A DNA stretch of 64,000 bases, taken from positions 124,001-188,000 of the IMG/VR virus record IMGVR_UViG_3300023174_000045. One strand, 5' to 3'. The position numbers were made by a program, and so were the translations under genes. This document shows positions 1 to 47,651 of this stretch, piece after piece. The notes beneath the pieces are model-generated. The model was not told the origin of the DNA. It ran no database searches and worked only from the letters and a program-made list of their open reading frames with translations. Numbering within the stretch: the first letter of the stretch is position 1; every line of letters starts with the position of its first letter.

Positions 1-1056
1 CTCAACGAAGGCATCTGGGACAGCATCAAAGGCACTGCCGGCAAGGCTGCTGGCAAGGCTGCTGACTGGGCCAAAACACAGGGTACCAATCTCACCACCA
101 AAGTCACTGCTGACAAATTAAAGAGTGCATGGCTCAAGGCTGGTTCACCCACAGACAGTGACCAAGTTTACAATGTGATGACTCAGGCCGGGGTGGCACC
201 ACAAATATTAGACACTGTGTACAAGACCATGGGCGTCCCCACGTTCAAAGAAAAAGCCCTAGCAAGACCAACAACACCTGCTTTTTCAAGCGCACCAATA
301 CCTGCTGGACCAGCATCTAAATCAGCAGCAGCCGCTGGGTCAGCACCAGCGACTACAACGCCAGCAAGTCCTGAAGTCACGCCTAACGCCGCTACACCAG
401 CAACAGCCGATGCCCCCAAGACAAAACAGTTGGGCACTGGTACTGGTCGTATCAATCCTGCCACTGGACGACCCTGGACTCCTAGCGAGCTCAAAGCCAA
501 GTATGCGCAACCACAGTCAACAGCGCCCACACCAGACTCAGAGCCACCTGCACCAGAACTTACTTCGCCAGAGCCTGCTTTAAAATCTAGCCCAACCGCA
601 CCGCAAAGCCCTGAAGAAATTAGAAAAGCCAAACAATCAGCTGCTGCTCTTGCTGCACAACAGGCCATGGGAGATGTTGCTTCACCAGCACCTGCACCTA
701 CTGTGGCGTCTACCCCGGCTCCAGCATCATCTGCCGCGCCTTCGGGTCCTCCTGGATTCAATGCTGGCAACTTGGCACAACTTCCCGGTATGGCACAATA
801 CATGCAACAAAAGCCGGCTGCGGCCAAACCTGCACCCAATTTTGCTCGAGGACCTGCTGCATATGGAAAGACCACAATGAATGTTGGACCAACTGCAACC
901 AAACCAACAGCCACAGCAGCACCAGCTGGCAAAAAGCCCACTGCACAACAGCAACAAGAATATTATAAATCTTTGGGATTGGCAGAGTCTCTGACCTGGA
1001 GCCAAAATTTTGATCCTGGACGCAGTCTGTATCGTAGAATGAAACAGGATATTTAA
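1..1056 (+). CDS. Ala/Pro-rich low-complexity protein, 5'-truncated
   Basis: Frame open from base 1 (LNEGIWDSIK...) through track ORF 175-1056. Confidence 0.75.
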   Translation, partial: LNEGIWDSIKGTAGKAAGKAADWAKTQGTNLTTKVTADKLKSAWLKAGSPTDSDQVYNVMTQAGVAPQILDTVYKTMGVPTFKEKALARPTTPAFSSAPIPAGPASKSAAAAGSAPATTTPASPEVTPNAATPATADAPKTKQLGTGTGRINPATGRPWTPSELKAKYAQPQSTAPTPDSEPPAPELTSPEPALKSSPTAPQSPEEIRKAKQSAAALAAQQAMGDVASPAPAPTVASTPAPASSAAPSGPPGFNAGNLAQLPGMAQYMQQKPAAAKPAPNFARGPAAYGKTTMNVGPTATKPTATAAPAGKKPTAQQQQEYYKSLGLAESLTWSQNFDPGRSLYRRMKQDI

Positions 1057-1136
1057 GAACACACCTACCTTAGGACCGTGTGGCCCGGCTGCTGGGTGAC
1101 GTGAGCGATTCGCTACCGTGATCGTCAAAGTGAGCA
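1057..1136. ncRNA. Candidate structured RNA with rRNA-complementary segments
   Basis: Three short hairpins; 15-nt and 9-nt complements to 23S 1919-1937 and 10-nt complement to 16S 518-527 (E. coli numbering). Confidence 0.55.
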
Positions 1137-1144
1137 AATTTCCA

Positions 1145-1172
1145 TTGACAATGCCAAAATTTGTGTTATACT
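1145..1172 (+). promoter_or_regulatory. sigma70-type promoter
   Basis: TTGACA-16-TATACT with TG extension. Confidence 0.65.
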
Positions 1173-1190
1173 AGTGTTTTAGGAGTATAC

Positions 1191-1451
1191 ATGGATACCA
1201 AAACATTCAACGGCGAGCAAAAACTCAAACTCACTCAAATCATCAACGAAGGTATGGCCGTGATGCACGAGATTGATACCCTTCAAGGTGGCCTGACCGA
1301 TACCATCAAGGCTGTGGCAGAAGAATTAGAAATCAAACCAGCTGTGCTGAAAAAAGCCATTAGAGTGGCACACAAGGCCGAATTTGGCAAGACCAAACAA
1401 GATCAAGAGCTGTTGGAAACAATTCTTGAAACCGTAGGCAAGACCTTATAA
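1191..1451 (+). CDS. T4 DsbA/GapR-like dsDNA-binding protein
   Basis: SD AGGAG; 86 aa helical, IKAVAEELEIKPAVLKKAIRVAHK pattern. Confidence 0.6.
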   Translation: MDTKTFNGEQKLKLTQIINEGMAVMHEIDTLQGGLTDTIKAVAEELEIKPAVLKKAIRVAHKAEFGKTKQDQELLETILETVGKTL

Positions 1452-1454
1452 ATA
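1447..1454 (+). promoter_or_regulatory. T4-type late promoter motif
   Basis: TATAAATA exact; also at 44482 and 46333. Confidence 0.5.
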
Positions 1455-1526
1455 CTGTTTTCAACAACAGCGAGTCGTTCACGTTACGAACATGTATCAT
1501 GGCTTACCGGCCACAAACGGAGAACA

Positions 1527-4187
1527 ATGAGTTATATTGACGCACTATTTGATCGTGAACACGATCGCATTCATGTTGTAGAACGCCGCGACGGCAAACG
1601 GCAGTATCGAGAGTATCCTGCCAATTATGTGTTCTACTACGACGACCCCCGAGGCAAGTTCCAAAGTATCTACGGCACGCCAGTGTCAAGGTTCAGTACC
1701 CGCAACAACAAAGAATTCCGCAAGGAAGTCCGAGCACAAAGCGGGCGACAGATCTACGAATCGGACATAAATCCCATATTCCGTTGCTTTGAAGAAAACT
1801 ACCGAGACCAAGACGCCCCCACATTACACACAGCATTTTTTGACATTGAAGTTGCTTTTGATGCTGTGCGTGGATTCTCGCCTGTGGAGGATCCTTTCAA
1901 TCCCATCACTGCTATATCGGTATATCTGGATTGGCTGGAGCAACTTGTGACACTTGTTGTGGCACCACGCCACATGAGTGCAGAGACTGCTCGTGAGATC
2001 TGTGCGGAATTTGAGAACACTGTGCTGTGCGAATCTGAAACAGACATGGTGAAGATGTTCCTGGACCTAATCGAAGATGCAGACATCTTGAGTGGTTGGA
2101 ATTCAGAAGGCTATGACATACCCTACACAATAAACCGTGTGACACGAGTACTCAGCAAAGACGACACCCGACGTTTTTGTTTGTGGGGGCAGTTTCCCAA
2201 GAAACGTATGTTTGAACGTTTTGGTGCTGAACAAGAAACTTATGACTTGGTGGGTCGTGTGCATATGGACTATATGCAACTGTATCGCAAATACACTTAT
2301 GAAGAGCGTCATAGTTATAGCCTGGATGCCATTGCTGAATACGAACTGGGTGAACGCAAAACACAATACGAAGGCACACTAGATCAATTGTACAACAACG
2401 ACTTTCCAAAGTTTATTGAATACAACCGACAAGATACATTGTTGTTGGACAAACTGGACAAGAAATTACGTTTCTTGGAACTGGCCAGCGAACTGGCACA
2501 TGCCAACACTGTGCTGTTGGCCACCACAATGGGTGCTGTGGCAGTGACTGAGCAGGCCATTATCAACGAAGCACATGAACGTGGCATGGTTGTGCCCAAT
2601 CGCAAGCAACGACTCACTGACGAGGACACACAGGCAGCAGGTGCCTATGTGGCATATCCCAAAAAAGGATTACATGAATGGATTGGGTCTGTGGACATCA
2701 ATTCATTGTATCCCAGTGCAATTCGTGCGTTGAACATGGGGCCAGAAACCATTATAGGTCAACTGCGTCCCATAATGACAGACCGGTATATCAAAGACAA
2801 AATGGCCAAGGGTGACTCATTTGCGGCAGCATGGGAAGGTGTGTTTGCCAGTCTAGAATACACTGCTGTGATGGAACAACAGCGTGGCACAGAGATCACC
2901 ATTGACTGGCAGTCAGGTGAGGAGACTGTACACTCGGGTGCTGAGATTTGGTACATGTTGTTTGACTCAAACCAACCTTGGATACTCAGTGCCAATGGTA
3001 CCATATTCACCTACGAAAAGAAAGGCGTTATTCCTGGCTTGCTGGAACGCTGGTATGCCGAACGCAAAGAAATGCAGGCCAAGAAAAAGGAGGCCAAGGA
3101 TGCCAAAGAGATTGCTTTCTGGGACAAACGTCAACTGGTTAAAAAGATTAATCTCAACAGTTTGTATGGCGCTATTCTTAATCCTGGCTGCCGCTTTTTT
3201 GACAAGCGAATTGGCCAATCAACTACCTTGACCGGTCGAAGTATTGCCAAACACATGGATGCGCACTTGAATGAATGTATCACAGGTGAATATGATCATA
3301 TGGGTAAAGCAGTAATCTACGGTGACACAGACTCCTGCTACTTCTCAGCATGGCCTGTGCTGAAACAAGAAGTTGCCGAAGGCCGCATGGAATGGTCAAA
3401 GGAAATCTGTATTCAGTTATACGATTCAATTGCTGACCAGGTGAACGACTCGTTCCCGGCATTTATGGAACGTGCTTTTCACTGTCCCAGAGACATGGGC
3501 GAGTTGATCAAAGCCGGACGTGAAACTGTAGCAGATCGCGGACTGTTCATCACCAAGAAACGCTATGCTGTGAACGCCATTGACATTGAAAACAAACGAC
3601 TGGACATCAACGGTGCTATTGGCAAGACCAAGGCTACTGGCCTGGATCTAAAGCGCAGTGATACCCCCAAAGTTATTCAAGACTTCTTGTTGGAAATTCT
3701 AAATAAAGTGCTGGCTGGTGCTGAACGTGAAGAAATCATTGAACGTGTGCGTGAGTTCAAGTATGAATTCAAAGAGCGGCCGGGCTGGGAAAAAGGCTCG
3801 CCCAAGCGTGTGAACAACTTGACCAAGTACGGCAAGGAAGAAGAACGCCTGGGCAAAGCCAACATGCCCGGACATGTACGTGCGGCCCTGAACTGGAACA
3901 ACTTGCGCAGAATGAATTCAGACAATTACAGTATGCAGGTGGTTGATGGTATGAAGACCATTGTGTGCAAACTGCGAAGCAATGCCTTGGGCTGGACGTC
4001 AATTGGCTATCCCACAGACGAGATGCACTTGCCGCAATGGTTCAAGGACTTGCCTTTTGATGACACAGAAATGGAAGCCACTGTGGTGGATCAAAAGATT
4101 GACAACTTATTAGGTGTGTTGGACTGGGACCTGGCAGCAGCCACCAACACTGAAAACACATTTACTTCGTTATTTTCTTTCGAATGA
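1527..4187 (+). CDS. DNA polymerase family B (T4 gp43-like)
   Basis: ExoI FDIE, motif A DINSLYPS, motif B KKINLNSLYG, motif C YGDTDS. Confidence 0.97.
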   Translation: MSYIDALFDREHDRIHVVERRDGKRQYREYPANYVFYYDDPRGKFQSIYGTPVSRFSTRNNKEFRKEVRAQSGRQIYESDINPIFRCFEENYRDQDAPTLHTAFFDIEVAFDAVRGFSPVEDPFNPITAISVYLDWLEQLVTLVVAPRHMSAETAREICAEFENTVLCESETDMVKMFLDLIEDADILSGWNSEGYDIPYTINRVTRVLSKDDTRRFCLWGQFPKKRMFERFGAEQETYDLVGRVHMDYMQLYRKYTYEERHSYSLDAIAEYELGERKTQYEGTLDQLYNNDFPKFIEYNRQDTLLLDKLDKKLRFLELASELAHANTVLLATTMGAVAVTEQAIINEAHERGMVVPNRKQRLTDEDTQAAGAYVAYPKKGLHEWIGSVDINSLYPSAIRALNMGPETIIGQLRPIMTDRYIKDKMAKGDSFAAAWEGVFASLEYTAVMEQQRGTEITIDWQSGEETVHSGAEIWYMLFDSNQPWILSANGTIFTYEKKGVIPGLLERWYAERKEMQAKKKEAKDAKEIAFWDKRQLVKKINLNSLYGAILNPGCRFFDKRIGQSTTLTGRSIAKHMDAHLNECITGEYDHMGKAVIYGDTDSCYFSAWPVLKQEVAEGRMEWSKEICIQLYDSIADQVNDSFPAFMERAFHCPRDMGELIKAGRETVADRGLFITKKRYAVNAIDIENKRLDINGAIGKTKATGLDLKRSDTPKVIQDFLLEILNKVLAGAEREEIIERVREFKYEFKERPGWEKGSPKRVNNLTKYGKEEERLGKANMPGHVRAALNWNNLRRMNSDNYSMQVVDGMKTIVCKLRSNALGWTSIGYPTDEMHLPQWFKDLPFDDTEMEATVVDQKIDNLLGVLDWDLAAATNTENTFTSLFSFE

Positions 4188-36503: not shown

Positions 36504-36578
36504 GGGCTGATAGCTTAATGGTAAAGCAGTCGACTCATAATCGATTGAGTCTAGGTTCAATTCCTAGTCAGCCCACCA
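36504..36578 (+). tRNA. tRNA CAT, Ile2-like (or Met)
   Basis: Cloverleaf, CGACTCATAATCG arm as in ileX, CCA. Confidence 0.85.
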
Positions 36579-36581
36579 ACA

Positions 36582-36656
36582 CTGGCGTTAGTATAATGGA
36601 TAATACAAAGAGCTTCTACCTCTTGAATGTGGGTTCGATTCCTGCACGCCGGACCA
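36582..36656 (+). tRNA. tRNA-Arg(TCT)
   Basis: Cloverleaf, CCA. Confidence 0.9.
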
Positions 36657-36670
36657 GTAAATACAACAGT

Positions 36671-36753
36671 GCGGGTGTGGTGGAATTGGTAGACACACCT
36701 GGTTTAAGCCCAGACGCTAAGGCGTGAGAGTTCAAGTCTCTCCACCCGTACCA
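36671..36753 (+). tRNA. tRNA-Leu(TAA)
   Basis: Cloverleaf with variable arm, CCA. Confidence 0.9.
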
Positions 36754-36764
36754 AAGGAACAATC

Positions 36765-37238
36765 ATGAGCGATATCAAAATTGAACCACATCATGACAGC
36801 GAAGGCACTGAAGATGACTTCTTTGATGACTTTCGTGCCAATGTGGCTCGATTAGAAGCCGAGCGCCGAGCCAGTGATGAGTTTAAAATCAACAACATGG
36901 AATATGACATGAGCCAGGCCGAGTGGTTTGTAAGCAAGGTGCGTGGCAGTGACAACTACGCACAGAACTTGTATGCTGCCATGTGCAACAACAGTTTTCA
37001 AAAGCAAGATGTTTGGCTGGTGCTGAAAGATGCGCACTGGAGTTGTAGTTGGCGTTACGCTGGTGGTGTTGTGGCTGACTTTAGAGATTGCAACGAAGAC
37101 TACATGAACTGGTACTGCTCAGGCATTGGTCCCAAAGAAGACACTGAGTTTGTGGGCGAAGGCACAGTCACAGACGAAATAGCCGCAGATTTGGCACTCC
37201 TGGGATGGCGTGTGATTGAAGATCCCGACAGCGAATAA
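36765..37238 (+). CDS. Hypothetical protein
   Basis: SD AAGGA. Confidence 0.75.
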   Translation: MSDIKIEPHHDSEGTEDDFFDDFRANVARLEAERRASDEFKINNMEYDMSQAEWFVSKVRGSDNYAQNLYAAMCNNSFQKQDVWLVLKDAHWSCSWRYAGGVVADFRDCNEDYMNWYCSGIGPKEDTEFVGEGTVTDEIAADLALLGWRVIEDPDSE

Positions 37239-37242
37239 CAGC

Positions 37243-37860
37243 ATGTACAAATACACCAATGCTACCCCCGATTGGCTGTATCAACAGCCAAATTTAAGTG
37301 TTGATGCATTACCGATTATCAAAAAAGAATTACTAACATTGTTTGAGTTGAGCAAAGAATTCAGTTTGGTTCCTTATACCAGCACATACATGGAAACGGG
37401 CAACAACGAGTTCATAGATCAGTACTGTCCAACATTGTGCAAAGAATTGAAAAAATTAAACCTACGAGATTCACTCAAGGTATTGGCATTTATTTCTGTT
37501 GTGATAGACAAACATTTTCCCGCCCATGTAGACGCTGAGTCAGAAGTGGCGTTGAATATTCCTTTGATCAACTGCGATGGTACCTATACTGTTTGGTACG
37601 ACGGCCAGACACAGTCAAAAGAATTTGACGATTATTTGATAGGCGTAGAATCTGCAAGAACTGCAATAGAAGGAACTGCTGATAGTTTGATAGAAATTGA
37701 TCGCTGCGAGGCCAACGTACCACGTTGGATCAATGTGAATGTGTTGCATAGACCTGAAACACAGCATGACAAATTAAGAGTTGCGGCTAGTTTGCGTTTT
37801 GATCCCGAACCATTGGACAATCATAGGCAGCTTTGGTCGCATTTGACAGTGTCAAAATGA
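37243..37860 (+). CDS. 2OG-Fe(II) oxygenase-like
   Basis: PAHVD, LNIPL, HRP, RVAASLRF. Confidence 0.65.
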   Translation: MYKYTNATPDWLYQQPNLSVDALPIIKKELLTLFELSKEFSLVPYTSTYMETGNNEFIDQYCPTLCKELKKLNLRDSLKVLAFISVVIDKHFPAHVDAESEVALNIPLINCDGTYTVWYDGQTQSKEFDDYLIGVESARTAIEGTADSLIEIDRCEANVPRWINVNVLHRPETQHDKLRVAASLRFDPEPLDNHRQLWSHLTVSK

Positions 37861-37871
37861 ACATGTTGAAA

Positions 37872-37900
37872 TTGACTGTAAACTTGTGTTTTGTTATAAT
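37872..37900 (+). promoter_or_regulatory. sigma70-type promoter
   Basis: TTGACT-17-TATAAT. Confidence 0.75.
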
Positions 37901-37992
37901 ACTAGCAGTGACGTTCACAAGCTATCAAAATCTAGCTGTAGACATCGGTCAAGCCTGGAGTTTGTGTAAATAACAGTCAACCGGAGACTGCT

Positions 37993-38148
37993 ATGAATTT
38001 GGTCAAATATCGAGATGCTGAGATGTGGACGTATACTTGGTTTTATGTGGGTGATACCGGACACATTGTGAGTCCGTATTTTGAAACAGAAAAACAAGCT
38101 CAGGAGTGGTTTGATCAAATTTTTGAAGGTGTTGAGGAGCAGTTATGA
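37993..38148 (+). CDS. 51-aa hypothetical protein
   Basis: SD GGAG, ATGA overlap with next gene. Confidence 0.6.
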   Translation: MNLVKYRDAEMWTYTWFYVGDTGHIVSPYFETEKQAQEWFDQIFEGVEEQL

Positions 38149-38537
38149 AAAAAGTGTTATTTGGTTTGTTATTGGTATCTGGTACAGTTCTGGCACAAGA
38201 TGTGTATGTGGTGGGCGCCCAGCCCAGGTATGTTACTGTGCAACAACAACAATGTCATGTAGTCAACGTGACTGAAAACAACAGCGGCGTTGGCACTGTG
38301 ATTGGTGCTGTGGCTGGTGGTGTAATCGGACATCAAGTGGGTCGTGGGTTTGGTCGCGATGTGGCCACTGTGTTGGGCACCGGCATTGGCGCTTCGGTGG
38401 GACAACGCATTGGACAAGATCAACAACAAACAGTGACCAAGCAAGTTTGTGACATGGTACCAGTTGTCATACAACAAGGTGAAACTGTGACATTTAATTA
38501 CAAGGGACGAGTGTTTACACAAGTTTTTGGTAATTAA
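38145..38537 (+). CDS. Secreted glycine-zipper 2TM protein (YcfJ-like)
   Basis: Signal peptide, GAVAGGVIGHQVGRG. Confidence 0.8.
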   Translation: MKKVLFGLLLVSGTVLAQDVYVVGAQPRYVTVQQQQCHVVNVTENNSGVGTVIGAVAGGVIGHQVGRGFGRDVATVLGTGIGASVGQRIGQDQQQTVTKQVCDMVPVVIQQGETVTFNYKGRVFTQVFGN

Positions 38538-38539
38538 AG

Positions 38540-38930
38540 TTATTGCTGTATGAAGCCGAGAGAAAAGTGTTCTGGACGGGGGTGCGAATCCCCCCAGGTC
38601 CACCATAAAGAAATTTGATGAAACCAAAAAAAGTAAAACAGTATTTTGTTATAGTAGACAAAGATGACACAGTAAAAAGAGTGTGTTGGGCACCTTTACT
38701 GTGGGATATTCCTAACCTGGGATATCGTTTTACAGGATTTGACGGTGGTATTCCAAAGTTTCTTTATGTCGGGCCTGCATAGTTTCGACAGGGCAACAAG
38801 TAACAGAGTGGACAGCACGGTAGGCGATGACCGTTAATCAAGCAAAAAACGTAAATGCAAACGACGAACAGTTCGCTTTGGCAGCCTAAACACTGCCTAG
38901 GGTAGGAAATACCTCGTAACAGAAACAACC
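38540..38930 (+). ncRNA. ssrA: Circularly permuted (two-piece) tmRNA, tag ANDEQFALAA
   Basis: T arm and CCA end at 38605 precede 5' GGGCCTG at 38771; G3:U70; tag 38857-38889; ends approximate. Confidence 0.92.
38618..38782 (+). CDS. Possible 54-aa ORF in tmRNA intervening segment
   Basis: Open ATG-TAG, no clear SD. Confidence 0.3.
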   Translation: MKPKKVKQYFVIVDKDDTVKRVCWAPLLWDIPNLGYRFTGFDGGIPKFLYVGPA

Positions 38931-38960
38931 CAAAAGGCCTTGACGGGCCTTTTGTCTTTG
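38931..38960 (+). terminator. Intrinsic terminator after tmRNA
   Basis: CAAAAGGCCT-TGAC-GGGCCTTTTG. Confidence 0.8.
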
Positions 38961-38988
38961 TGTATACTACACTATTGAGGAGAACAAC

Positions 38989-39180
38989 ATGAGCAAAGGC
39001 ACACGACCCCGTCCGTCAGTGGTCAGTCAACAAGAACTGGCTGCAAGGCACGAAGCCATATTTGGCCGGAAGCCACCACGAGAACGTTATGTTCCGCCAC
39101 CCTTGCCACCTGAACTGGCAGGACCCAGTTCTTTTGAACAGCAGTTGGGCACCACAAAACTTCCGCCCGGAAGAACATAA
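38989..39180 (+). CDS. Small Pro-rich hypothetical protein
   Basis: SD GAGGAG. Confidence 0.7.
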   Translation: MSKGTRPRPSVVSQQELAARHEAIFGRKPPRERYVPPPLPPELAGPSSFEQQLGTTKLPPGRT

Positions 39181-39205
39181 ATTGGCAAAAGACATTTAAA
39201 AATCG

Positions 39206-39234
39206 TTGACTTTCTTTCATTCATCATATATAAT
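39206..39234 (+). promoter_or_regulatory. Promoter of attenuator 1
   Basis: TTGACT-17-TATAAT; ATG 6 nt downstream. Confidence 0.8.
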
Positions 39235-39239
39235 ACACT

Positions 39240-39347
39240 ATGAACAAGCAAAACGCCCAACTGTCCTTTGAGATACCCTCACATGATTTACACGATTATG
39301 CACGTGAGGCGCTGGCCTATACTAACAGCGGGTGGAGCGGTACCTAA
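39240..39347 (+). CDS. Leaderless 35-aa leader peptide (attenuator 1)
   Basis: MNKQNAQLSFEIPSHDLHDYAREALAYTNSGWSGT. Confidence 0.65.
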   Translation: MNKQNAQLSFEIPSHDLHDYAREALAYTNSGWSGT

Positions 39348-39367
39348 TACAAAAGTACTACTCAAGC

Positions 39368-39400
39368 AAAAACCCGCCACCTAGGCGGGTTTTTCTTTTT
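39368..39400 (+). terminator. Attenuator 1 terminator
   Basis: AAAAACCCGCC-ACCTA-GGCGGGTTTTT plus T tract. Confidence 0.88.
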
Positions 39401-39404
39401 GTGC

Positions 39405-39548
39405 TAGACCAATAATGGGATAGGTGTTATACTAGAGACTAGTTAGGAAAGCAACACAGCAAAGTTTGCAAAGACCCTACAAAGCGAAGGGATTTTGCAA
39501 AACAAGTTGACCAGAATAGCACAAGGTGTTATACTAGAGACTAGTTAG
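39405..39548 (+). promoter_or_regulatory. Tandem promoters sharing a 25-nt repeat
   Basis: TAGACC/TTGACC-17-TATACT; AGGTGTTATACTAGAGACTAGTTAG at 39422 and 39524. Confidence 0.75.
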
Positions 39549-39731
39549 AAAGCAAGGCGGTCCTCGAATGTAAGAACCCACGCAGAAATGCAAAAAGGGT
39601 TGGAACCAAGGGACACGAAGCGAGTTTGTAGACTCGGCCTCCGCAGGTTAAAACAGCACAGTCGATCGAGACTAGTTGAAAGGTTCGTTAAAATTTTGAT
39701 TGTCATGTAGTCCCTGTCTAGTTACAGGGTA

Positions 39732-39963
39732 CTATATGTAAACACATTAGGGTTACCTAGCCGTTAGGGGTGAACGAAGGCCAGACAGCGCAAGCCGGAT
39801 ACCCATGAAGCAGGAGGGTTCTACAGTATGACGAGACACCATCGAGTCAAAGGGCAAGAACTATCAAACTCCAGGAAGGCGACGGAACAACTGGGCCCGT
39901 AATGAGGTCTTGACGCAAGTTGGTGATGCGTGTCAAGAACTTCCCTAATGTATTTTCATATAG
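39732..39963 (+). ncRNA. Helix-closed ncRNA A (~230 nt)
   Basis: CTATATG..CACATTAGGG pairs with CCCTAATGT..CATATAG; internal hairpins. Confidence 0.7.
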
Positions 39964-39966
39964 CAT

Positions 39967-40042
39967 GCACGGTTCGTCTATCGGTTTAGGACACTAGCCT
40001 TTCACGTTAGTAAGACGGGTTCGATTCCCGTACCGTGTACCA
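39967..40042 (+). tRNA. tRNA-Glu(TTC)
   Basis: Cloverleaf, CCA. Confidence 0.92.
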
Positions 40043-40045
40043 AGT

Positions 40046-40185
40046 TGTCGAGGAACTCCATCCTTAAACGGGGGGCAACACTGGGCCTACGAAGTGGGTG
40101 ATTGCAAAAACCAGAAAGAGCAACGTTGACATTGACGAAAAAATGTCTTACGATGAATAAACGTCCTAATAGGGGCTTGTCGACA
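40046..40185 (+). ncRNA. Candidate ncRNA B
   Basis: TGTCGA/TCGACA closing helix, imperfect extension. Confidence 0.45.
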
Positions 40186-40208
40186 CACAAGTAGCCTGTA
40201 CTAATTTT

Positions 40209-40294
40209 GGAGATGTGGCAGAGTGGTTGATTGCACCAGACTGTAAATCTGGCCCCTAAAAAGCGCGGTGGTTCGAATCCATCCGTCTCCACCA
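40209..40294 (+). tRNA. tRNA-Tyr(GTA)
   Basis: Cloverleaf with variable arm, CCA. Confidence 0.92.
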
Positions 40295-40303
40295 ATTTTG
40301 TTT

Positions 40304-40455
40304 TTATAGTCAAGCATCGATACAGGTATCGTGTAAGGACGCTTACGCTATTCGGGTCCAACCGGCCGGGAACGGATCCTAATATAACTGCTATCGGCTG
40401 TTGCACTCTTAGCGGAGGACGCATAAATTGAGCATCTCTCGGTGCTTGACTATAA
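40304..40455 (+). ncRNA. Helix-closed ncRNA C
   Basis: 17-bp closing helix, three internal hairpins. Confidence 0.7.
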
Positions 40456-40461
40456 GAATTT

Positions 40462-40537
40462 GGTCCTAAAGTGTTCATGGACGCACGACGGCTTGTCACG
40501 CCGTAAGAGTGGGGATCGTTACCCCCTAGGACCGCCA
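40462..40537 (+). tRNA. tRNA-Asp(GTC)
   Basis: Cloverleaf, atypical T loop ATCGTTA, CCA. Confidence 0.88.
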
Positions 40538-40543
40538 AGTTTT

Positions 40544-40622
40544 GCAGATAATGGATAGGGCGGGCATCTATTGGTGCCTAATACTAGTTGCCGCAGAGGT
40601 TCGAGTCCTCTGGTCTGCACCA
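40544..40622 (+). ncRNA. tRNA-like RNA 1 (acceptor and T arm, no canonical D/anticodon arms)
   Basis: GCAGAT/GTCTGC, A73-CCA, AGAGG-TTCGAGT-CCTCT. Confidence 0.65.
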
Positions 40623-40628
40623 AGTTTT

Positions 40629-40727
40629 TGCGTTATAGTATAGTGGCCAGTACGCAAGGGCCCACACAATGAAAATTGTATGGTGGGAATTGCCAGTGTA
40701 GCGATGGTTCGATTCCATCTAACGCAA
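40629..40727 (+). ncRNA. tRNA-like RNA 2 (anticodon arm replaced by GAAA-capped long hairpin)
   Basis: 7-bp acceptor, D arm with GG, T arm; no encoded CCA. Confidence 0.7.
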
Positions 40728-40734
40728 TATCATT

Positions 40735-40952
40735 TTTGAGAGTGTCAGCAAGCGCAGTCACGCTATCTAGGTAAGTTCGAACTACCGAAATAGTAAAAGG
40801 GGACGGGTTCAACTCCCGGGGGATCGGAAGATCCCTGCAGATTGGTTGCTAACTGGACAGGTACCCAAGTGATATCCATCGCGAGCGAGGTCAGGCTAGG
40901 CGGCCGGTAGGTCCTGAATAAATCTACGATAAAAGTGACGTAGGCTCTCAAA
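40735..40952 (+). ncRNA. YrlA-like RNA with circularly permuted tRNA domain
   Basis: T arm, then GGAA-closed acceptor helix, then D arm (40804-40854); 9-bp terminal helix. Confidence 0.65.
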
Positions 40953-40960
40953 TTCAATCG

Positions 40961-41037
40961 GCGACCATAGCTCATTTGGATAGAGCACTGTGCTACGAAC
41001 GCAGGGGTGGGAGGTTCGAATCCTTCTGGTCGCGCCA
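40961..41037 (+). tRNA. tRNA-Arg(ACG)
   Basis: Cloverleaf, CCA. Confidence 0.92.
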
Positions 41038-41132
41038 TGTAAAAACACTCTAAACTGGACGCAGGATCTGAGAAGGTTGAACGTAGGTTGATCACTACTA
41101 GTAAGCTGGAGATCAAGAGTGTTTCTACATGG
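41035..41132 (+). ncRNA. Inter-tRNA helix element
   Basis: CCATGTAAAAACACTCT / AGAGTGTTTCTACATGG. Confidence 0.7.
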
Positions 41133-41207
41133 TGCGTGTCGTCAAGCGGTCAAGACCTCGGATTGTGATTCCGATATGCGTGGGTTCGAATCCCATCATG
41201 CACCCCA
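41131..41207 (+). tRNA. tRNA-His(GTG)
   Basis: Encoded G-1:C73, CCA. Confidence 0.92.
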
Positions 41208-41230
41208 ACACAAGATAAATAAAAGAATAA

Positions 41231-41305
41231 CGCGGGGTAGAGAAGCAGTAACTCGTTAGGCTCATAACCTAAAGATCGGCGGTGCGAATCCGTCCTCCGC
41301 AACCA
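41231..41305 (+). tRNA. tRNA-fMet(CAT)
   Basis: C1:A72 mismatch; only two G-C pairs next to anticodon loop. Confidence 0.85.
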
Positions 41306-41321
41306 AATTTTAGGAGTTTTT

Positions 41322-41729
41322 ATGATAGCAATTAACACGGTAATAAAACCGATGGTGGGCCACGAACAAGAAGCAATTGACAATTTCTATACTTTTCATA
41401 AATCACCACACCCGGAGTTATTTGAATTTTTTAAAGAGTTTGTGGATCAAAATTTAATTTTGAATACGATGTTTTGGCAGCCATATGATGACCGAAATCT
41501 CAATCATTTGCTTAGATACTATGCTGTCAATATGGAAAATGCCGAAATTTTTCAAGAAAAATTATTGAGTGAGTCTGCAGATTTTTCAATGAAAAAATTC
41601 TGGGATCAAAATAAATTTGACTATTCAATTGAGTTGACAGAAATAAACTTTGATGAAGAATTTCCACAATACTATGTTGTAGATAATGAGTCTGGTGGAG
41701 TTTGGGGAGACGTTTGGCCATTGCTTTGA
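41322..41729 (+). CDS. Hypothetical protein, paralogue A
   Basis: SD AGGAG; FEFFKEFVDQNLILN. Confidence 0.75.
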   Translation: MIAINTVIKPMVGHEQEAIDNFYTFHKSPHPELFEFFKEFVDQNLILNTMFWQPYDDRNLNHLLRYYAVNMENAEIFQEKLLSESADFSMKKFWDQNKFDYSIELTEINFDEEFPQYYVVDNESGGVWGDVWPLL

Positions 41730-42208
41730 TATGCGTTGAAGTTTATTGCAGGCCAACAAAAAAATGTGATTTTGTTGCTGTTCGATCGTGGACAGAATTT
41801 ATATGTGCTGAGTATCCAGCGATGTTTGACTTCTTTCAAGAGTGCATTGATCAAAATTTAATTGTGAACAAATTTGCATTAAATGTAGATGGAGTTACAG
41901 ACTTATGGAAATACTACTCCTCCAATCAAACTCAAGCTGAAATTTTTCTTGAAAAATTTAAAAATATGCCTTTGAATTTTTCTAAAGAGAAGTTTTCAAT
42001 GAAAGAATTTTGGAATCGTTATGAGTTTGAAATTGATATGTCACTCAAAGAAATAGATTTTGACAACGAAAAAGAATTATTTGATTTGATAAACAAAGAC
42101 ACCGGTGAGATGTGGGCTACTACATTTCCATTAGGTGGACCGCTTGATAATTATTACCAGTTAGAAAAACATTTTCAGCCACAGTGGTTGACAACAAAAG
42201 ATAAATAA
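41726..42208 (+). CDS. Hypothetical protein, paralogue B (probable TTG start)
   Basis: FDFFQECIDQNLIVN aligns to A; start chosen by alignment. Confidence 0.65.
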   Translation: MICVEVYCRPTKKCDFVAVRSWTEFICAEYPAMFDFFQECIDQNLIVNKFALNVDGVTDLWKYYSSNQTQAEIFLEKFKNMPLNFSKEKFSMKEFWNRYEFEIDMSLKEIDFDNEKELFDLINKDTGEMWATTFPLGGPLDNYYQLEKHFQPQWLTTKDK

Positions 42209-42216
42209 ACTATAAT
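42188..42216 (+). promoter_or_regulatory. Promoter of attenuator 2
   Basis: TTGACA-17-TATAAT exact consensus. Confidence 0.85.
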
Positions 42217-42223
42217 AGGAACT

Positions 42224-42334
42224 ATGATGAAACAACAATTCTGTTCAATGTCCAAGCCCCAAACACTCCAGGCAACAACCTGGCTGTTGGCCAATGGCTC
42301 ATTCAACAGCATTCCAGGAGAACCGGGGTTCTGA
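42224..42334 (+). CDS. Leaderless 36-aa leader peptide (attenuator 2)
   Basis: MMKQQFCSMSKPQTLQATTWLLANGSFNSIPGEPGF. Confidence 0.7.
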   Translation: MMKQQFCSMSKPQTLQATTWLLANGSFNSIPGEPGF

Positions 42335-42361
42335 TTAGACTATATTCGTATACCTAACAAG

Positions 42362-42396
42362 AACCCCGGAACTAAACACTCCGGGGTTTTTCATTT
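42362..42396 (+). terminator. Attenuator 2 terminator
   Basis: AACCCCGGA/TCCGGGGTT 9 bp plus T tract. Confidence 0.85.
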
Positions 42397-42399
42397 AGT

Positions 42400-42578
42400 G
42401 CAACGGCAACGCGAGCCGGTATCACTCTAAACTACAAATGTGGGCGGCCCGGAGGATGGGAAGCTGGTGGTGAAAACGCCAGTGGTAAAATTCCGGAGTA
42501 TCGAAGCATTCTCGGGCCTTGGGGCAAGTGGGTTCATCCATGAAGAGTGCTTCGATACACACATTGGCAACAGTGTGT
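42400..42578 (+). ncRNA. Structured leader / candidate ncRNA D
   Basis: 15-bp helix 42498-42512/42544-42558 plus nested hairpins. Confidence 0.55.
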
Positions 42579-42588
42579 TGAAATTTAT

Positions 42589-42662
42589 TCCGGTGTAGTA
42601 TAATGGCAGTGCGGCGGTCTCCAAAACCGTTAGTGGGAGTTCGATTCTCTCCACCGGAGCCA
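42589..42662 (+). tRNA. tRNA-Trp(CCA)
   Basis: Cloverleaf, CCA. Confidence 0.92.
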
Positions 42663-42669
42663 AGTTAAT

Positions 42670-42744
42670 GGGGGGTTGGTGCTAACGGGAACACATGTGC
42701 TTTGCAAGCATGAGTTAAGGGTTCGATTCCCTTACCCTCCACCA
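42670..42744 (+). tRNA. tRNA-Ala(TGC)
   Basis: G3:U70, CCA. Confidence 0.9.
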
Positions 42745-42766
42745 TAGTCAGTATAAGTATTCACAA

Positions 42767-42856
42767 GGTGCGGTCCTATAATGGTATTAGAGCAGATTGC
42801 TAATCTGTCGCTCGGCGTAATCCGGGTTCTGAGTTCGAGTCTCAGTCGCACCGCCA
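42767..42856 (+). tRNA. tRNA-Ser(GCT)
   Basis: Long variable arm, G73, CCA. Confidence 0.9.
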
Positions 42857-42863
42857 AGAACAT

Positions 42864-42939
42864 TCCCTCGTAGCACAGCGGTAGTTGCGCTTCACTGTTA
42901 ATGAAGATGTCGTTCGTTCGATCCGAACCGAGGGAGCCA
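42864..42939 (+). tRNA. tRNA-Asn(GTT)
   Basis: Cloverleaf, CCA. Confidence 0.92.
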
Positions 42940-42957
42940 AATAAAAAAGGAAACGCA

Positions 42958-43140
42958 ATGTCAGCATTTAACACACACAACGACCCATTGAAACACAAGA
43001 CTGGTAAGCCCAGACTTGGTCCAATGAATGTAGAACAGTTGACCCGACTGTTGGAGAGTGCCAGACCCAAACATCGTGCAAAGATTCAACGTGCCTTGGA
43101 CTACAAGAAAACAATTCAAAAGATCATAGCAAAGGCTTGA
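42958..43140 (+). CDS. Basic 60-aa hypothetical protein
   Basis: SD AAGGA. Confidence 0.65.
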   Translation: MSAFNTHNDPLKHKTGKPRLGPMNVEQLTRLLESARPKHRAKIQRALDYKKTIQKIIAKA

Positions 43141-43145
43141 TATCC

Positions 43146-43219
43146 GCCCTACTAGTATAATGGCATTACACTGGTTTTGTAATCCTGTGATGGCAGTTCG
43201 ATTCTGTCGTGGGGCACCA
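43146..43219 (+). tRNA. tRNA-Thr(TGT)
   Basis: Cloverleaf; two U:U mismatches in anticodon stem. Confidence 0.82.
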
Positions 43220-43271
43220 AATTTTTACAAAGGAGATCTGTCATGAGTAGTGACAAGAGTGACAAACCTAT

Positions 43272-43346
43272 GGGGGTATAACTTAACGGCTAAAGTAGTG
43301 GGCTTTTAACCCATTAATCAGAGTTCGATTCTCTGTGCCCCTACCA
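43272..43346 (+). tRNA. tRNA-Lys(TTT)
   Basis: Cloverleaf, CCA. Confidence 0.9.
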
Positions 43347-43420
43347 TATAAAAACACATTAACAGCGTCGTACCGGTCGCCGGACTTAGGTTGAATTCCT
43401 AATAGTGTGTTTCTATATGG
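43344..43420 (+). ncRNA. Inter-tRNA helix element
   Basis: CCATATAAAAACACATT / AGTGTGTTTCTATATGG. Confidence 0.7.
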
Positions 43421-43494
43421 TAATATAGCATAGTGGCTAATGCAGTTGCTTCATACGCAACCCACCGTTGGTTCGAGTCCAACTATTACCACCA
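43419..43494 (+). tRNA. tRNA-Met(CAT), elongator-like
   Basis: Cloverleaf, CCA. Confidence 0.85.
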
Positions 43495-43500
43495 AGTTTT

Positions 43501-43575
43501 GGCCAGTTAGCTCAGGGGTAGAGCAACGTCTTGATAAGGCGTGGGTCGGTGGTTCGAGACCACCACTGGCTACCA
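43501..43575 (+). tRNA. tRNA-Ile(GAT)
   Basis: Cloverleaf, CCA. Confidence 0.92.
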
Positions 43576-43582
43576 ATTCAGT

Positions 43583-43658
43583 TGGGGTGTCGCCTAGAGG
43601 CCTAAGGCACTGGTCTTTGAAATCAGTATCATGAGTTCGAATCTCATCTCCCCTGCCA
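43583..43658 (+). tRNA. tRNA-Gln(TTG)
   Basis: Unpaired 1:72, G73, CCA. Confidence 0.85.
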
Positions 43659-43665
43659 AACAACG

Positions 43666-43694
43666 TAGACAAACTTTGATGTTTGTTGTATAAT
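43666..43694 (+). promoter_or_regulatory. Internal promoter
   Basis: TAGACA-17-TATAAT. Confidence 0.7.
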
Positions 43695-43702
43695 TACACA
43701 AT

Positions 43703-43777
43703 GCGGGATTAACTCAGGGGTAGAGTGTCAGCCTTCCAAGCTGTTCGTCAGCGGTTCGAATCCGCTATCCCGCTCCA
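43703..43777 (+). tRNA. tRNA-Gly(TCC)
   Basis: U73, CCA. Confidence 0.92.
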
Positions 43778-43797
43778 CTTTAACAGAAAGAAACAAC

Positions 43798-44004
43798 ATG
43801 ACAATTGAGAGTGCCGCAACCTTTTTGGTATGTGTAATTTTATTGAGCTGTGGTATCATAGTGCTGGCCGGTCTAGTATTATTGATCAACAACCTGTTGC
43901 ATCGCTACTGGAAAGATCTAAACTGGACTCTACCTGAGAGCATGCAGTCCGTACGTTATGTTGAAGTTGACAAAACTCAAGAACCCCATTTAGACCGCAA
44001 GTAA
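43798..44004 (+). CDS. Small membrane protein
   Basis: N-terminal hydrophobic helix. Confidence 0.6.
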   Translation: MTIESAATFLVCVILLSCGIIVLAGLVLLINNLLHRYWKDLNWTLPESMQSVRYVEVDKTQEPHLDRK

Positions 44005-44048
44005 TACCGACCCCTTGACGGTTTAGGTCCCTTGTACTTGCGGTCTAA
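43990..44048 (+). other. 14-bp inverted repeat before tRNA-Pro
   Basis: TTAGACCGCAAGTA / TACTTGCGGTCTAA. Confidence 0.7.
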
Positions 44049-44055
44049 TTTTTTA

Positions 44056-44129
44056 CTCCGATTGGTGAAATGGTATCATTCATGGTTTGGGACCATGTGG
44101 CGCAAGTTCGATTCTTGCATCGGAGACCA
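44056..44129 (+). tRNA. tRNA-Pro(TGG)
   Basis: Cloverleaf, CCA. Confidence 0.9.
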
Positions 44130-44135
44130 TGTAAT

Positions 44136-44213
44136 GCAACGGTGGCAGAGCGGCCCAATGCACGGGATTGCAAATCCCGAAAACCACTGGTTCAAATCCA
44201 GTCCGTTGCTCCA
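44136..44213 (+). tRNA. tRNA-Cys(GCA)
   Basis: U73, CCA. Confidence 0.92.
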
Positions 44214-44227
44214 ACAAGAAAGTACCT

Positions 44228-44473
44228 ATGTGGGAATATGTTTTAACGTTTTTTGCTGTGTTGTTCACAGATATTTTTTATACCTACTACCTAAAAGCAG
44301 TACAAGATGAACGTGTGATGGCTGCCAGTGTTTGGGCCACTGTTGTATTTTTGGTAGCCTGCGTAGCAGTGATCAACTACACAACAAATTACTGGTTGCT
44401 GATTCCTGCAGGGCTAGGTGCGTTTTGTGGCACTTGGATAGGCATGAGATTACGGGCTCAACAAAAGCAGTAG
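44228..44473 (+). CDS. Small multi-TM protein (DUF2179-like)
   Basis: Three hydrophobic helices, GAFCGTWIG. Confidence 0.6.
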   Translation: MWEYVLTFFAVLFTDIFYTYYLKAVQDERVMAASVWATVVFLVACVAVINYTTNYWLLIPAGLGAFCGTWIGMRLRAQQKQ

Positions 44474-44493
44474 TGATCGTCTATAAATATAGC

Positions 44494-44889
44494 ATGTCCA
44501 TTTACAATCAGTATTTTTGCCAACATTGTCGTTCTGCGTATTCTAGATCACAAGAAAAATTAACTCCAGGATATTGCAGTTTGAATTGTTCTGTGGTTGA
44601 GTCAAAAAGACAGTCGCAAAAAACTTTCAAAGAACTAACTTTGGAAGACAGAATCAAAAATCGACCTGGTGGCACATATCTTGAGTACAACAGTGGTATT
44701 CCTCCTGAACTGGCTGTAGAAACAACCCCAGTCAAAAGAAGAGAGTACAAATGTGTTTGTTGCGGCATTGCTGATTACAATGGCCGTCCGTTGAAACTAC
44801 AACTGTTTCACCATGACGGTAATCAAAAGAATTTTGACCCAGACAATGTTAAATTTTTGTGTCCAAATTGTTTGAGCCAACATCAATAA
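44494..44889 (+). CDS. HNH-family protein, possibly degenerate
   Basis: CVCC, LQLFHHDGN..N..FLCPNCL; TATAAATA upstream. Confidence 0.7.
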   Translation: MSIYNQYFCQHCRSAYSRSQEKLTPGYCSLNCSVVESKRQSQKTFKELTLEDRIKNRPGGTYLEYNSGIPPELAVETTPVKRREYKCVCCGIADYNGRPLKLQLFHHDGNQKNFDPDNVKFLCPNCLSQHQ

Positions 44890-44895
44890 ATCAAA

Positions 44896-44985
44896 GGAAG
44901 TGTGGCAGAGTCCGGCTGATTGCACCTGTCTTGAAAACAGACGGCTCGAAAGGGTCCGTGAGTTCGAATCTCACCGCTTCCACCA
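44896..44985 (+). tRNA. tRNA-Ser(TGA)
   Basis: Long variable arm; A73 rather than G73. Confidence 0.88.
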
Positions 44986-44991
44986 AAAATC

Positions 44992-45066
44992 GCCTTGTTA
45001 ACTCAGCGGTAGAGTAGCGCCTTTACACGGCGAATGTCGGCGGTTCGATCCCGTCACAAGGTACCA
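44992..45066 (+). tRNA. tRNA-Val(TAC)
   Basis: Cloverleaf, CCA. Confidence 0.92.
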
Positions 45067-45072
45067 ACCAAT

Positions 45073-45148
45073 GGCTCGATAGCTCAGTTGGTAGAGCAGT
45101 AGACTGAAAATCTATGTGTGGGCGGTTCGATCCCGTCTCGAGCCACCA
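45073..45148 (+). tRNA. tRNA-Phe(GAA)
   Basis: Cloverleaf, CCA. Confidence 0.93.
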
Positions 45149-45345
45149 AATGTATTATCCAACACAAACTCATGTTGTTGTGGTTCAAATATGGGATCGT
45201 CTGCATATTGAGGCACAGTGTGTTGGTAAAGAGGATTCACTGTGAATTCTTTGGTTGTGGTCCATGATCGGTTGGGCCTGTAGGGTTCATGGCTAAATGC
45301 GGCATACAGCACCTGCACAGTGTCTCGTAGTTCATATGGAATCAT
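45112..45345 (-). CDS. Possible antisense ORF overlapping tRNA-Phe 3' end
   Basis: 77 aa, TAAATA just upstream on minus strand. Confidence 0.35.
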   Translation of the reverse strand: MIPYELRDTVQVLYAAFSHEPYRPNRSWTTTKEFTVNPLYQHTVPQYADDPIFEPQQHEFVLDNTFGGSRRDRTAHT

Positions 45346-45357
45346 ATTGTATTTAAT

Positions 45358-45434
45358 GCCCCGGTGATGGAATTGGTATACATGCCGGTCTTAGAAGCCG
45401 TATTTTAGGAGTTCGAGTCTCCTCTGGGGCACCA
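45358..45434 (+). tRNA. tRNA-Leu(TAG), short variable loop
   Basis: 77 nt, A73, CCA. Confidence 0.85.
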
Positions 45435-45439
45435 ATTCA

Positions 45440-45514
45440 GGATGTTTAGCACAGCGGTAGTGCATCACCTCGACACGGTGAGGGTCAGTGGTTCAATTCC
45501 ACTAACATCCACCA
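45440..45514 (+). tRNA. tRNA-Val(GAC)
   Basis: Cloverleaf, CCA. Confidence 0.9.
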
Positions 45515-45521
45515 CAAATCT

Positions 45522-45600
45522 GCCCCCATGGACAAATCGGTAAAGTCGTCTCTCTCAAAAGGAGAAGTTGTTCTCTGTTCGAATCAGAGTGGGGGTACCA
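45522..45600 (+). tRNA. tRNA-Leu(CAA), short variable loop
   Basis: 79 nt, A73, CCA. Confidence 0.85.
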
Positions 45601-45608
45601 TTCCTAAT

Positions 45609-45685
45609 GCCCTGGTGGCGCAATTGGTAGACGCACCACTTTGAGGGGGTGTACAGTGTGAGTTCGAGTCTCACCCAGGGCACCA
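45609..45685 (+). tRNA. tRNA-Leu(GAG), short variable loop
   Basis: 77 nt, A73, CCA. Confidence 0.82.
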
Positions 45686-45686
45686 A

Positions 45687-45715
45687 TTGACAACAAATTC
45701 AAAATCAATTACAAT
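45687..45715 (+). promoter_or_regulatory. Internal promoter
   Basis: TTGACA-17-TACAAT. Confidence 0.75.
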
Positions 45716-45723
45716 ACACACAC

Positions 45724-45797
45724 GGGCTGTTAGTTAAATGGGATAACTCTGCCATGGCATGGCAGCATCGGGAGTTCGACTCTCCCACGGTCCACCA
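45724..45797 (+). tRNA. tRNA-Ala(GGC)
   Basis: G3:U70 and A32-U38 as in bacterial Ala(GGC). Confidence 0.92.
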
Positions 45798-45818
45798 CTA
45801 TCAAGAAAGGAGTCAGTG

Positions 45819-46253
45819 ATGAGTGAATTTAACGTATTGGTTGGCAAGCGCATCAATGGCTTGTTCATAGGCGAAGATGCTTGGGCCTTGGTGTTTCGCG
45901 ACATCAATGAACGTTACTATTGTTTTCGCACAGAGAACGATTGTTGCAACGCTGTGTGGTTCAATCACGTAAACGGTGTAGAAACTGTGCTGGGCGAAGG
46001 CAACTTGTTCGATGTCCTGCGTGGTGCCATGGTAACTGCTGTGGAAGACAAAGGCTGGACTGATGATCGCGACGACGAAGATGGCTACGAAGTTGTGCAA
46101 GATGGTTTCTGGACCATAAAAACAGACCGTGGCTACATAGACTTAGAAGTACGCAACAGTCACAACGGCTACTATGGTGGCCGTGTGCGGTATGATGAAG
46201 AGTCCAAGCCTGGTGACATCAAAGATTTACAAGCAGTGACTGAAGATTTTTAA
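45819..46253 (+). CDS. Hypothetical protein
   Basis: SD AAGGAG; RNSHNGYYGG. Confidence 0.75.
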   Translation: MSEFNVLVGKRINGLFIGEDAWALVFRDINERYYCFRTENDCCNAVWFNHVNGVETVLGEGNLFDVLRGAMVTAVEDKGWTDDRDDEDGYEVVQDGFWTIKTDRGYIDLEVRNSHNGYYGGRVRYDEESKPGDIKDLQAVTEDF

Positions 46254-46330
46254 CGGAATATGGCGCAGCCTGGCAGCGCACTTGCATGGGGTGCAAGGGG
46301 TCGCAAGTTCGAATCTTGCTATTCCGACCA
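46254..46330 (+). tRNA. tRNA-Pro(GGG)
   Basis: Cloverleaf, CCA. Confidence 0.92.
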
Positions 46331-46355
46331 ACTATAAATAACCTTGAAAGTGTAT

Positions 46356-46826: not shown

Positions 46827-46832
46827 AATATT

Positions 46833-46908: not shown

Positions 46909-46922
46909 ACTAAAAAGTTTGT

Positions 46923-47646: not shown

Positions 47647-47651
47647 GACAA

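Follow-up and report, generated by a model that had tools for sequence, protein, structure and literature searches.

A widely conserved structured phage RNA with exposed loops complementary to the helix 69–70 region of bacterial 23S ribosomal RNA

We analysed a 64,000-nucleotide stretch of the IMG/VR virus record IMGVR_UViG_3300023174_000045 (positions 124,001 to 188,000 of that record; hereafter, the window). Near its start, the gap at 1057-1190 separates an upstream ORF, which ends on the + strand and runs off the window start, from an 86-aa ORF that is followed by a family B DNA polymerase. The upstream ORF encodes a Pro/Ala/Thr-rich low-complexity protein with no family match, and the proteins at the same position in relatives range from 64 to 1,498 aa, some carrying a LysM domain. 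The 86-aa ORF has its own near-consensus sigma-70 type promoter and Shine-Dalgarno sequence, which we regard as context and not as part of the RNA element described below. Elsewhere, the window holds a cluster of 34 tRNA genes called by ARAGORN, of which the Rfam tRNA model confirms 32, and a phage-encoded permuted (two-piece) tmRNA. The coordinates of these features are collected in the table.

Features of the window discussed in the text (positions are those of the window; position 1 is its first letter)
Position	Strand	Feature	Details
1-1056	+	Upstream ORF	Low-complexity protein; runs off the window start
1054-1056	+	TAA stop codon of the upstream ORF	The element starts directly after it
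1056-1146	+	Whole conserved RNA element (class 1 architecture)	Single copy in the window
1060-1082	+	Hairpin P1	Stem 1060-1064 CACAC with 1078-1082 GUGUG; loop 1065-1077 with invariant CCUUAGGAC(C)
1065-1079	+	Segment antisense to 23S 1919-1933	In P1
1084-1096	+	Hairpin Pb	CCCGG CUG CUGGG
1086-1095	+	Complement of 16S 518-527	In Pb
1088-1090	+	5' half of the pseudoknot	Pb loop GCU, pairs with AGC at 1133-1135
1097-1127	+	Hairpin Pc	Stem 1097-1107 with 1117-1127; loop 1108-1116 AUUCGCUAC
1102-1105 with 1119-1122	+	Internal loop of the Pc stem	UGAG/UGAU, symmetric
1109-1117	+	Segment antisense to 23S 1929-1937	In Pc
1127-1136	+	Conserved tail	AAAGUGAGCA
1133-1135	+	3' half of the pseudoknot	AGC, in the tail
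1145-1172	+	Sigma-70 type promoter (context)	TTGACA, 16 nt, TG-TATACT
1181-1185	+	Shine-Dalgarno sequence (context)	For the 86-aa ORF
1191-1451	+	86-aa ORF	
1527-4187		Family B DNA polymerase	75 nt from the 86-aa ORF
36504-47726		tRNA gene cluster	34 genes by ARAGORN, 32 confirmed by Rfam
38510-38980		Permuted tmRNA, betaproteobacterial type	RF01850, 133.8 bits; RF04321, 139.8 bits; tag peptide ANDEQFALAA
40462-40537		tRNA-Asp(GUC)	Not reached by the Rfam tRNA model
40544-40622		tRNA with anticodon CUA	Called 'Pyl'; possible amber suppressor; not reached by the Rfam tRNA model
48845-48859		Second exact 15-mer to 23S	Sense, 23S 1553-1567, in a non-conserved part of 23S

The original prediction held that three segments of this gap, set in the small stems CACAC/GTGTG, CCCGG/CTGGG and TGACG/CGTCA, are complementary to 23S and 16S rRNA. 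The observation is confirmed: against the E. coli K-12 rrnH operon all three matches are exact, and the three stems are real and covary in relatives. Within the window alone, however, the observation is no better than chance. A second exact 15-mer to E. coli 23S rRNA is present in the window and serves as a chance-level control. In addition, 1,633 maximal matches of 9 nt or more occur in the window, about 2.0 per 80 nt, whereas the gap has 4, a count that 16% of 80-nt windows reach. Likewise, 15 other pairs of nearby matches hit neighbouring rRNA positions, and neither strand folds better than shuffles (z-scores of -0.24 and -0.44). A search of the window for the target sequences GUAGCGAA and CGGUCCUAA elsewhere found none.

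Comparison with relatives changes this verdict. Using the DNA polymerase as query, and therefore without reference to the motif, we retrieved 80 IMG/VR loci at 83-97% amino-acid identity and aligned the DNA upstream of the small ORF. The alignment reveals a conserved element of ~85 nt in which the stems differ from locus to locus (CACAC/GUGUG against ACUC/GAGU, GGGC/GCCC against CCC/GGG, and a 10-bp stem that is different almost everywhere), while CCUUAGGACCG and AUUCGCUAC do not change. Where the element is missing directly upstream of the small ORF, it lies 0.7-2.4 kb further upstream with another gene inserted between. In many relatives the 86-aa ORF itself lies about 1.1-2.4 kb further from the polymerase gene than in the window, and one or more genes are therefore inserted there. 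A covariance model built from 32 of these sequences finds 61 of the 80 loci plus the window, with exactly one copy each and always on the gene strand. The window has a single hit at 82.5 bits (E 8e-26), and the next best hit in 64 kb on both strands scores 8.7 bits. We also found a decayed copy (locus L074 of our collection, 1841-1943; 20 bits), in which Pc and the tail are intact and identical to those of locus L073 but P1 and Pb have been replaced by unrelated sequence.

The covariation is strong. On the MAFFT alignment the score is 0.419 against 0.178 for shuffles, with 0 of 500 shuffles reaching it, and on the model alignment it is 0.560 against 0.177, with all 22 pairs changed on both sides and slid controls at most 0.106. 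In Pc, ten of ten stem pairs show changes on both sides while the loop is invariant in the polymerase-fetched set. In the window's close subgroup the internal loop of the Pc stem may form tandem sheared G-A pairs (CUGA...GUGAUG in relatives), and it is replaced by ordinary pairs in other subgroups. About one stem pair in ten is G-U on the + strand (27 of 326 and 29 of 259 stem pairs), which places the RNA on that strand.

The original prediction further proposed that the Pb segment is directed at the 16S 530 loop. This is not supported, since the Pb loop pairs with the element's own 3' tail in a pseudoknot. Across instances the loop varies (GGCU[G/U/A/C]CU, GGGUGCU, CUCCCC) and covaries with the tail: GCU/AGC switches to GGU/ACC in six sequence types, to GCUAC/GUAGC and GCCAC/GUGGC, and to CCCC/GGGG in four loci from three loop-and-tail sequence types, two of the loci sharing one type. 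The three core pseudoknot pairs are kept in the polymerase-fetched set, and the pseudoknot was not part of the model. This explains why GGCUGCU is conserved and removes the need for a 16S target. In fact, the loop varies at positions that would break 16S pairing, the triloop position being G, U, A or C, and the whole hairpin is missing from the second architecture described below.

A pattern scan of viral contigs for the two loop words returned at least 120 rows, as did scans that fixed only one loop plus the Pb word, and no contig appears twice within a scan. Besides class 1, these scans reveal an AT-rich class 2, probably from Flavobacteria phages. It consists of a 5' hairpin P0, a single-stranded yUUAGGA, a hairpin Pa that starts at the CCG, a linker, and a Pc stem of 8-11 bp that is an intrinsic terminator with loop (A/G)UUCGCUAC(U), followed by a U-run on the + strand. 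In contrast, no + strand terminator was called at 1057-1140 of the window, where Pc is followed by the conserved tail. To avoid circularity, we fetched 80 relatives of the ribonucleotide reductase (RNR) alpha gene, which precedes the element in 12 class 2 loci; of 42 distinct downstream regions, 24 carry the element, and the rest have a plain terminator or no terminator. We note that many other instances were fetched with patterns that fix one or both loops, so that only part of the conservation evidence is unbiased.

A pattern scan of genome contigs returned mostly chance hits (about 2,000 expected from pattern size) and 23S genes themselves, with flanking stems of 4 bp or less in 111 of 120 matches. 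Only one contig, from a Cellvibrionaceae MAG (L253, 2297-2345), looks like a genuine class 2 element, with a terminator hairpin whose loop is UUUCGCUAC; it may be a prophage or a mis-binned phage contig. An Aliicoccus MAG contig (L213, 3030-3119) carries a tandem array with a period of about 51 nt, each unit of which holds both UUAGGACCG and UCGCUAC words plus an inverted repeat GTTGTAGCGA/TCGCTACAAC, and which is neither a 23S gene nor the phage element.

The nearest cultured relatives of class 2 phages are Flavobacterium and Cellulophaga phages, whereas the window's phage is nearest to Atu_ph07- and Phosso-type jumbo phages, at 48-51% polymerase identity; the polymerase of Atu_ph07 is annotated in two pieces. 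The betaproteobacterial type of its tmRNA hints at a betaproteobacterial host. No cultured phage with the element was found. BLAST of the gap and of class 2 elements against 50,697 phage records gave no homologous element, the only hits being 23S genes in contaminated records and two spurious partial matches (Erwinia phage Yoloswag and Escherichia phage vB_Eco4M-7) that were rejected on inspection. The syntenic regions of the closest isolates also lack it, both in Flavobacterium phage immuto after nrdA and in 43 kb around the Sinorhizobium phage Phosso polymerase, where hits scored 13 bits or less.

The element follows unrelated genes. In 134 of 154 distinct instances a same-strand ORF ends at most 150 nt (mostly 6-30 nt) before the UUAGGACCG segment, but the upstream proteins fall into 45 clusters and the 129 downstream proteins into 49, with examples including LysM proteins, dCMP deaminase, RNR alpha, a desaturase, terminase, a radical SAM enzyme and, downstream, a small regulator-like protein. 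Association with a specific upstream or downstream gene, as expected of a riboswitch or gene-specific cis-regulator, was therefore rejected. In other loci a different gene follows the element without a promoter.

The element matches no Rfam 15 family. Window 900-1600 searched at E up to 10 gave only noise at 17 bits or less, ten class 2 loci at gathering score gave 0 hits, a class 2 element at E up to 10 gave only generic hairpin-terminator noise, and in the whole window only tRNAs and the tmRNA matched. A literature search found no description of the motif. Box C/D-like words (CUGA and GUGAU(G)) occur only in the window's close subgroup, inside the Pc stem, and are replaced by ordinary pairs elsewhere; no conserved ACA box is present, and the two complementary segments are in permuted order relative to a pseudouridylation pocket. 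No Rfam match to a known self-cleaving ribozyme (hammerhead, twister, pistol, hatchet, HDV-like) was obtained, and at ~85 nt between unrelated ORFs the element is not a group II intron. Mimicry of a tRNA anticodon loop by UUAGGA, suggested by the 7-nt loop AUUAGGA of class 2b, was dropped because loop size varies from 7 to 13 nt.

The 23S-matching segments are exactly the invariant loops of this covarying RNA. The two loops, CCUUAGGAC(CG) and (A)UUCGCUAC, are unpaired in every architecture and tile 23S 1920-1937 as CGGUCCUAAGG plus GGUAGCGAA, the P1 loop contributing 11 nt to 1920-1930 and the Pc loop 9 nt to 1929-1937, with E. coli rRNA used as a proxy for that of the hosts. Lack of conservation of the matching segments in homologues had been set beforehand as a condition that would refute the idea, and the idea passes this test. 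Four further observations were not built into the searches. In class 2, the Pa loop keeps UAGUU/GUU at 90% or more, and the ten bases after CCG match antisense H69 at 5.9 of 10, against 3.3 for shuffles; several copies are contiguous antisense over 18 nt, and BLAST of one element hits annotated 23S genes at 18 of 18 nt. The only internal substitutions in the P1 loop among more than 200 distinct elements are A-to-G opposite U1923 or U1926, which keep a G-U pair and arose in several lineages of both classes. End positions are looser (U to C at the 5' end, G to A or U at the 3' end), and the 3' G is also structural, since it covaries with a partner within the RNA in one locus (L047).

When the Pc loop is left free in the search, 42 of 74 new class 1 elements have UUCGCUAC, twelve have one-base variants at the loop's 5' end, and six have CCGCUAC. 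Five more, each with a different stem, have (U)AACGCCAUU(C), whose best rRNA complement is 9 nt at 23S 1968-1976. Since, by sequence and by the E. coli secondary structure, 1968-1975 is the strand that pairs with 1934-1941 in helix 70, two unrelated loop sequences point at the two strands of the same helix. Nine class 1 elements carry a conserved GGGAGUCGUGCCCC inside differing outer stems, for which we found no convincing rRNA complement. Overall, four separate conserved single-stranded segments map antisense within 23S 1912-1976. A rough estimate from sequence lengths puts the chance that an 11-mer and an adjacent 8-mer both match antisense rRNA at about 2e-6, and each further 9-mer within 100 nt adds about 4e-4.

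In sum, the comparative data establish a previously undescribed, abundant, single-copy structured RNA on the + strand, with three helices and a pseudoknot that hold two invariant loops single-stranded, and with these loops antisense to 23S domain IV, helices 69-70. That the loops pair with 23S rRNA, when they would do so, and to what effect is inferred from sequence alone, as is our view that the RNA is made as the 3' UTR or intercistronic part of the upstream gene's transcript. The interpretation given in the original prediction, an anti-rRNA RNA on the plus strand that blocks assembly or subunit joining or guides a nuclease or modifier, is thus partly supported: conserved loops antisense to 23S are found, whereas the 16S target and the alternative of a minus-strand rRNA mimic are not supported.

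In our preferred explanation, which we consider about as likely as not, the loops act in trans as seeds on host 23S 1920-1937, that is, the 3' strand of helix 69, the linker and the start of helix 70 at the subunit interface. Some family members would instead use a loop against the opposite strand of helix 70, and class 2 would add the antisense of the H69 loop. The two loops would bind adjacent target segments in the order in which EBS2 and EBS1 of group II introns bind their exon, so simultaneous binding is topologically reasonable. Because the target strands are paired in mature 50S, the most likely point of action is nascent or unfolded domain IV, or free 50S with a mobile H69, and the likely consequence is interference with, or remodelling of, 50S maturation or subunit joining during infection. 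The occurrence of the same loop sequences in phages of very different composition and probable hosts (Flavobacteria-type T4-like phages and a betaproteobacterial-type jumbo phage) fits a universally conserved host target, and antisense access to H69 has a precedent in a PNA that inhibits E. coli growth (Kulik et al. 2017, as cited in PMC7038079). We note, however, that seeds of 8-11 nt have equally stable alternative sites by energy alone, for example 16S ~720 for the Pc loop, and that the GGGAGUCGUGCCCC loops remain unexplained.

The loops may instead be kept for another reason, such as binding a phage or host protein or a ligand, or making tertiary contacts, with the resemblance to 23S being incidental or a relic of origin. 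Invariant loops with variable stems are typical of protein- or ligand-binding RNAs, the Pb loop similarly looked like a 16S complement but turned out to be intramolecular, one Pc loop type lacks a convincing complement, and both classes occur in T4-superfamily phages, which could share an RNA-binding protein. Against this stands the mapping of four different conserved segments to one 65-nt stretch of 23S, and the unrelated flanking genes speak against a gene-specific riboswitch or operator; we regard this possibility as less likely, although it is the strongest of the alternatives. More doubtful still is that the element pairs with 23S but acts in cis, tethering the 50S subunit or the terminating ribosome to enhance re-initiation or translation of neighbouring genes, as a bacterial counterpart of rRNA-complementary viral enhancers. 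Its position after a same-strand stop codon, and often 20-45 nt before the next start codon with no room for a promoter, would fit, but the spacing to the stop codon is not fixed, a terminator follows the element in class 2, and in the window the next gene has its own promoter and Shine-Dalgarno sequence.

A new self-cleaving ribozyme or RNA-processing signal that cuts polycistronic phage transcripts seems unlikely: the element is small and pseudoknotted, with a conserved core and variable stems, and sits in the gene orientation between unrelated genes, but no Rfam ribozyme model matches, the conserved nucleotides lie in hairpin loops rather than at helix junctions, and the 23S complementarity would be left unexplained. 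Very unlikely is that the minus strand is an rRNA mimic or decoy, or that the DNA itself is the feature, as an rDNA-derived fragment or homing-endonuclease site. The minus strand does read as 23S-sense segments, and the 23S 1910-1937 region is a hot spot for rDNA homing endonucleases; however, G-U pairs on the + strand would be A-C mismatches on the minus strand, the terminator U-runs are on the + strand, and the segments are permuted relative to rDNA and separated by covarying stems. Pure chance, in the form of ordinary intergenic hairpins next to a promoter, agrees with the within-window statistics and the unremarkable folding energy but is refuted by the conservation, covariation and recurrence in hundreds of contigs.

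Trans-acting base-pairing small RNAs, including 3'UTR-derived sRNAs and kissing-loop antisense RNAs, share with this element its small size, conserved single-stranded seeds presented in loops, variable scaffolding stems and, in class 2, an intrinsic terminator at the 3' end directly after an ORF. Here, however, the predicted target is ribosomal RNA and not an mRNA, there are two or three separate seeds for one contiguous target, class 1 has no terminator, and no chaperone link is known. The resemblance to EBS1/EBS2-IBS1/IBS2 recognition is one of topology only, with the loop for the 5' part of the target coming first but with no catalytic domains and no reverse transcriptase. Box C/D and H/ACA guides are also small RNAs that pair with conserved rRNA segments, but the family lacks their conserved boxes, its complementary segments are in the reverse order of a pseudouridylation pocket, and such guides have not been described in bacteria and phages. 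T7 gene 10 epsilon, calicivirus TURBS and luteovirus BTE are viral or phage segments complementary to rRNA that are proposed to recruit or hold ribosomes; those elements target small-subunit rRNA and act in cis on the same mRNA, whereas the predicted target here is large-subunit helices 69-70. The synthetic anti-H69 PNA is artificial, contiguous and directed at 1907-1919, while the phage RNA is natural, structured and centred on 1920-1937. Finally, ribosomal-protein leaders show relatedness to rRNA in a non-rRNA transcript, but they are same-sense mimics that bind a protein, whereas this RNA is antisense.

A bolder reading, possible but in our view somewhat less likely than not, is that diverse phages encode natural anti-ribosomal-RNA antisense RNAs, in which a compact pseudoknotted scaffold presents interchangeable loops against either strand of 23S helix 70 and against helix 69. 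During infection such an RNA would invade or trap domain IV of nascent or free 50S, shutting down or reprogramming host ribosome production or subunit joining, and this would be the first RNA-guided attack on, or editing of, the ribosome by a virus of bacteria.

The case also shows that a within-window match that is statistically worthless can still mark a real element. Even if the pairing is not real, the family is a new, abundant and well-supported structured RNA of uncultivated phages, with more than 200 distinct instances, and merits description. If the pairing is real, phages would have a previously unknown way of touching the translation machinery, with a small RNA aimed at one of the most conserved and functionally central parts of the large subunit, bridge B2a (H69) and helix 70. 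Because the target is universal, the same RNA could be tested directly in E. coli, and it could be a natural template for antisense antibacterials.
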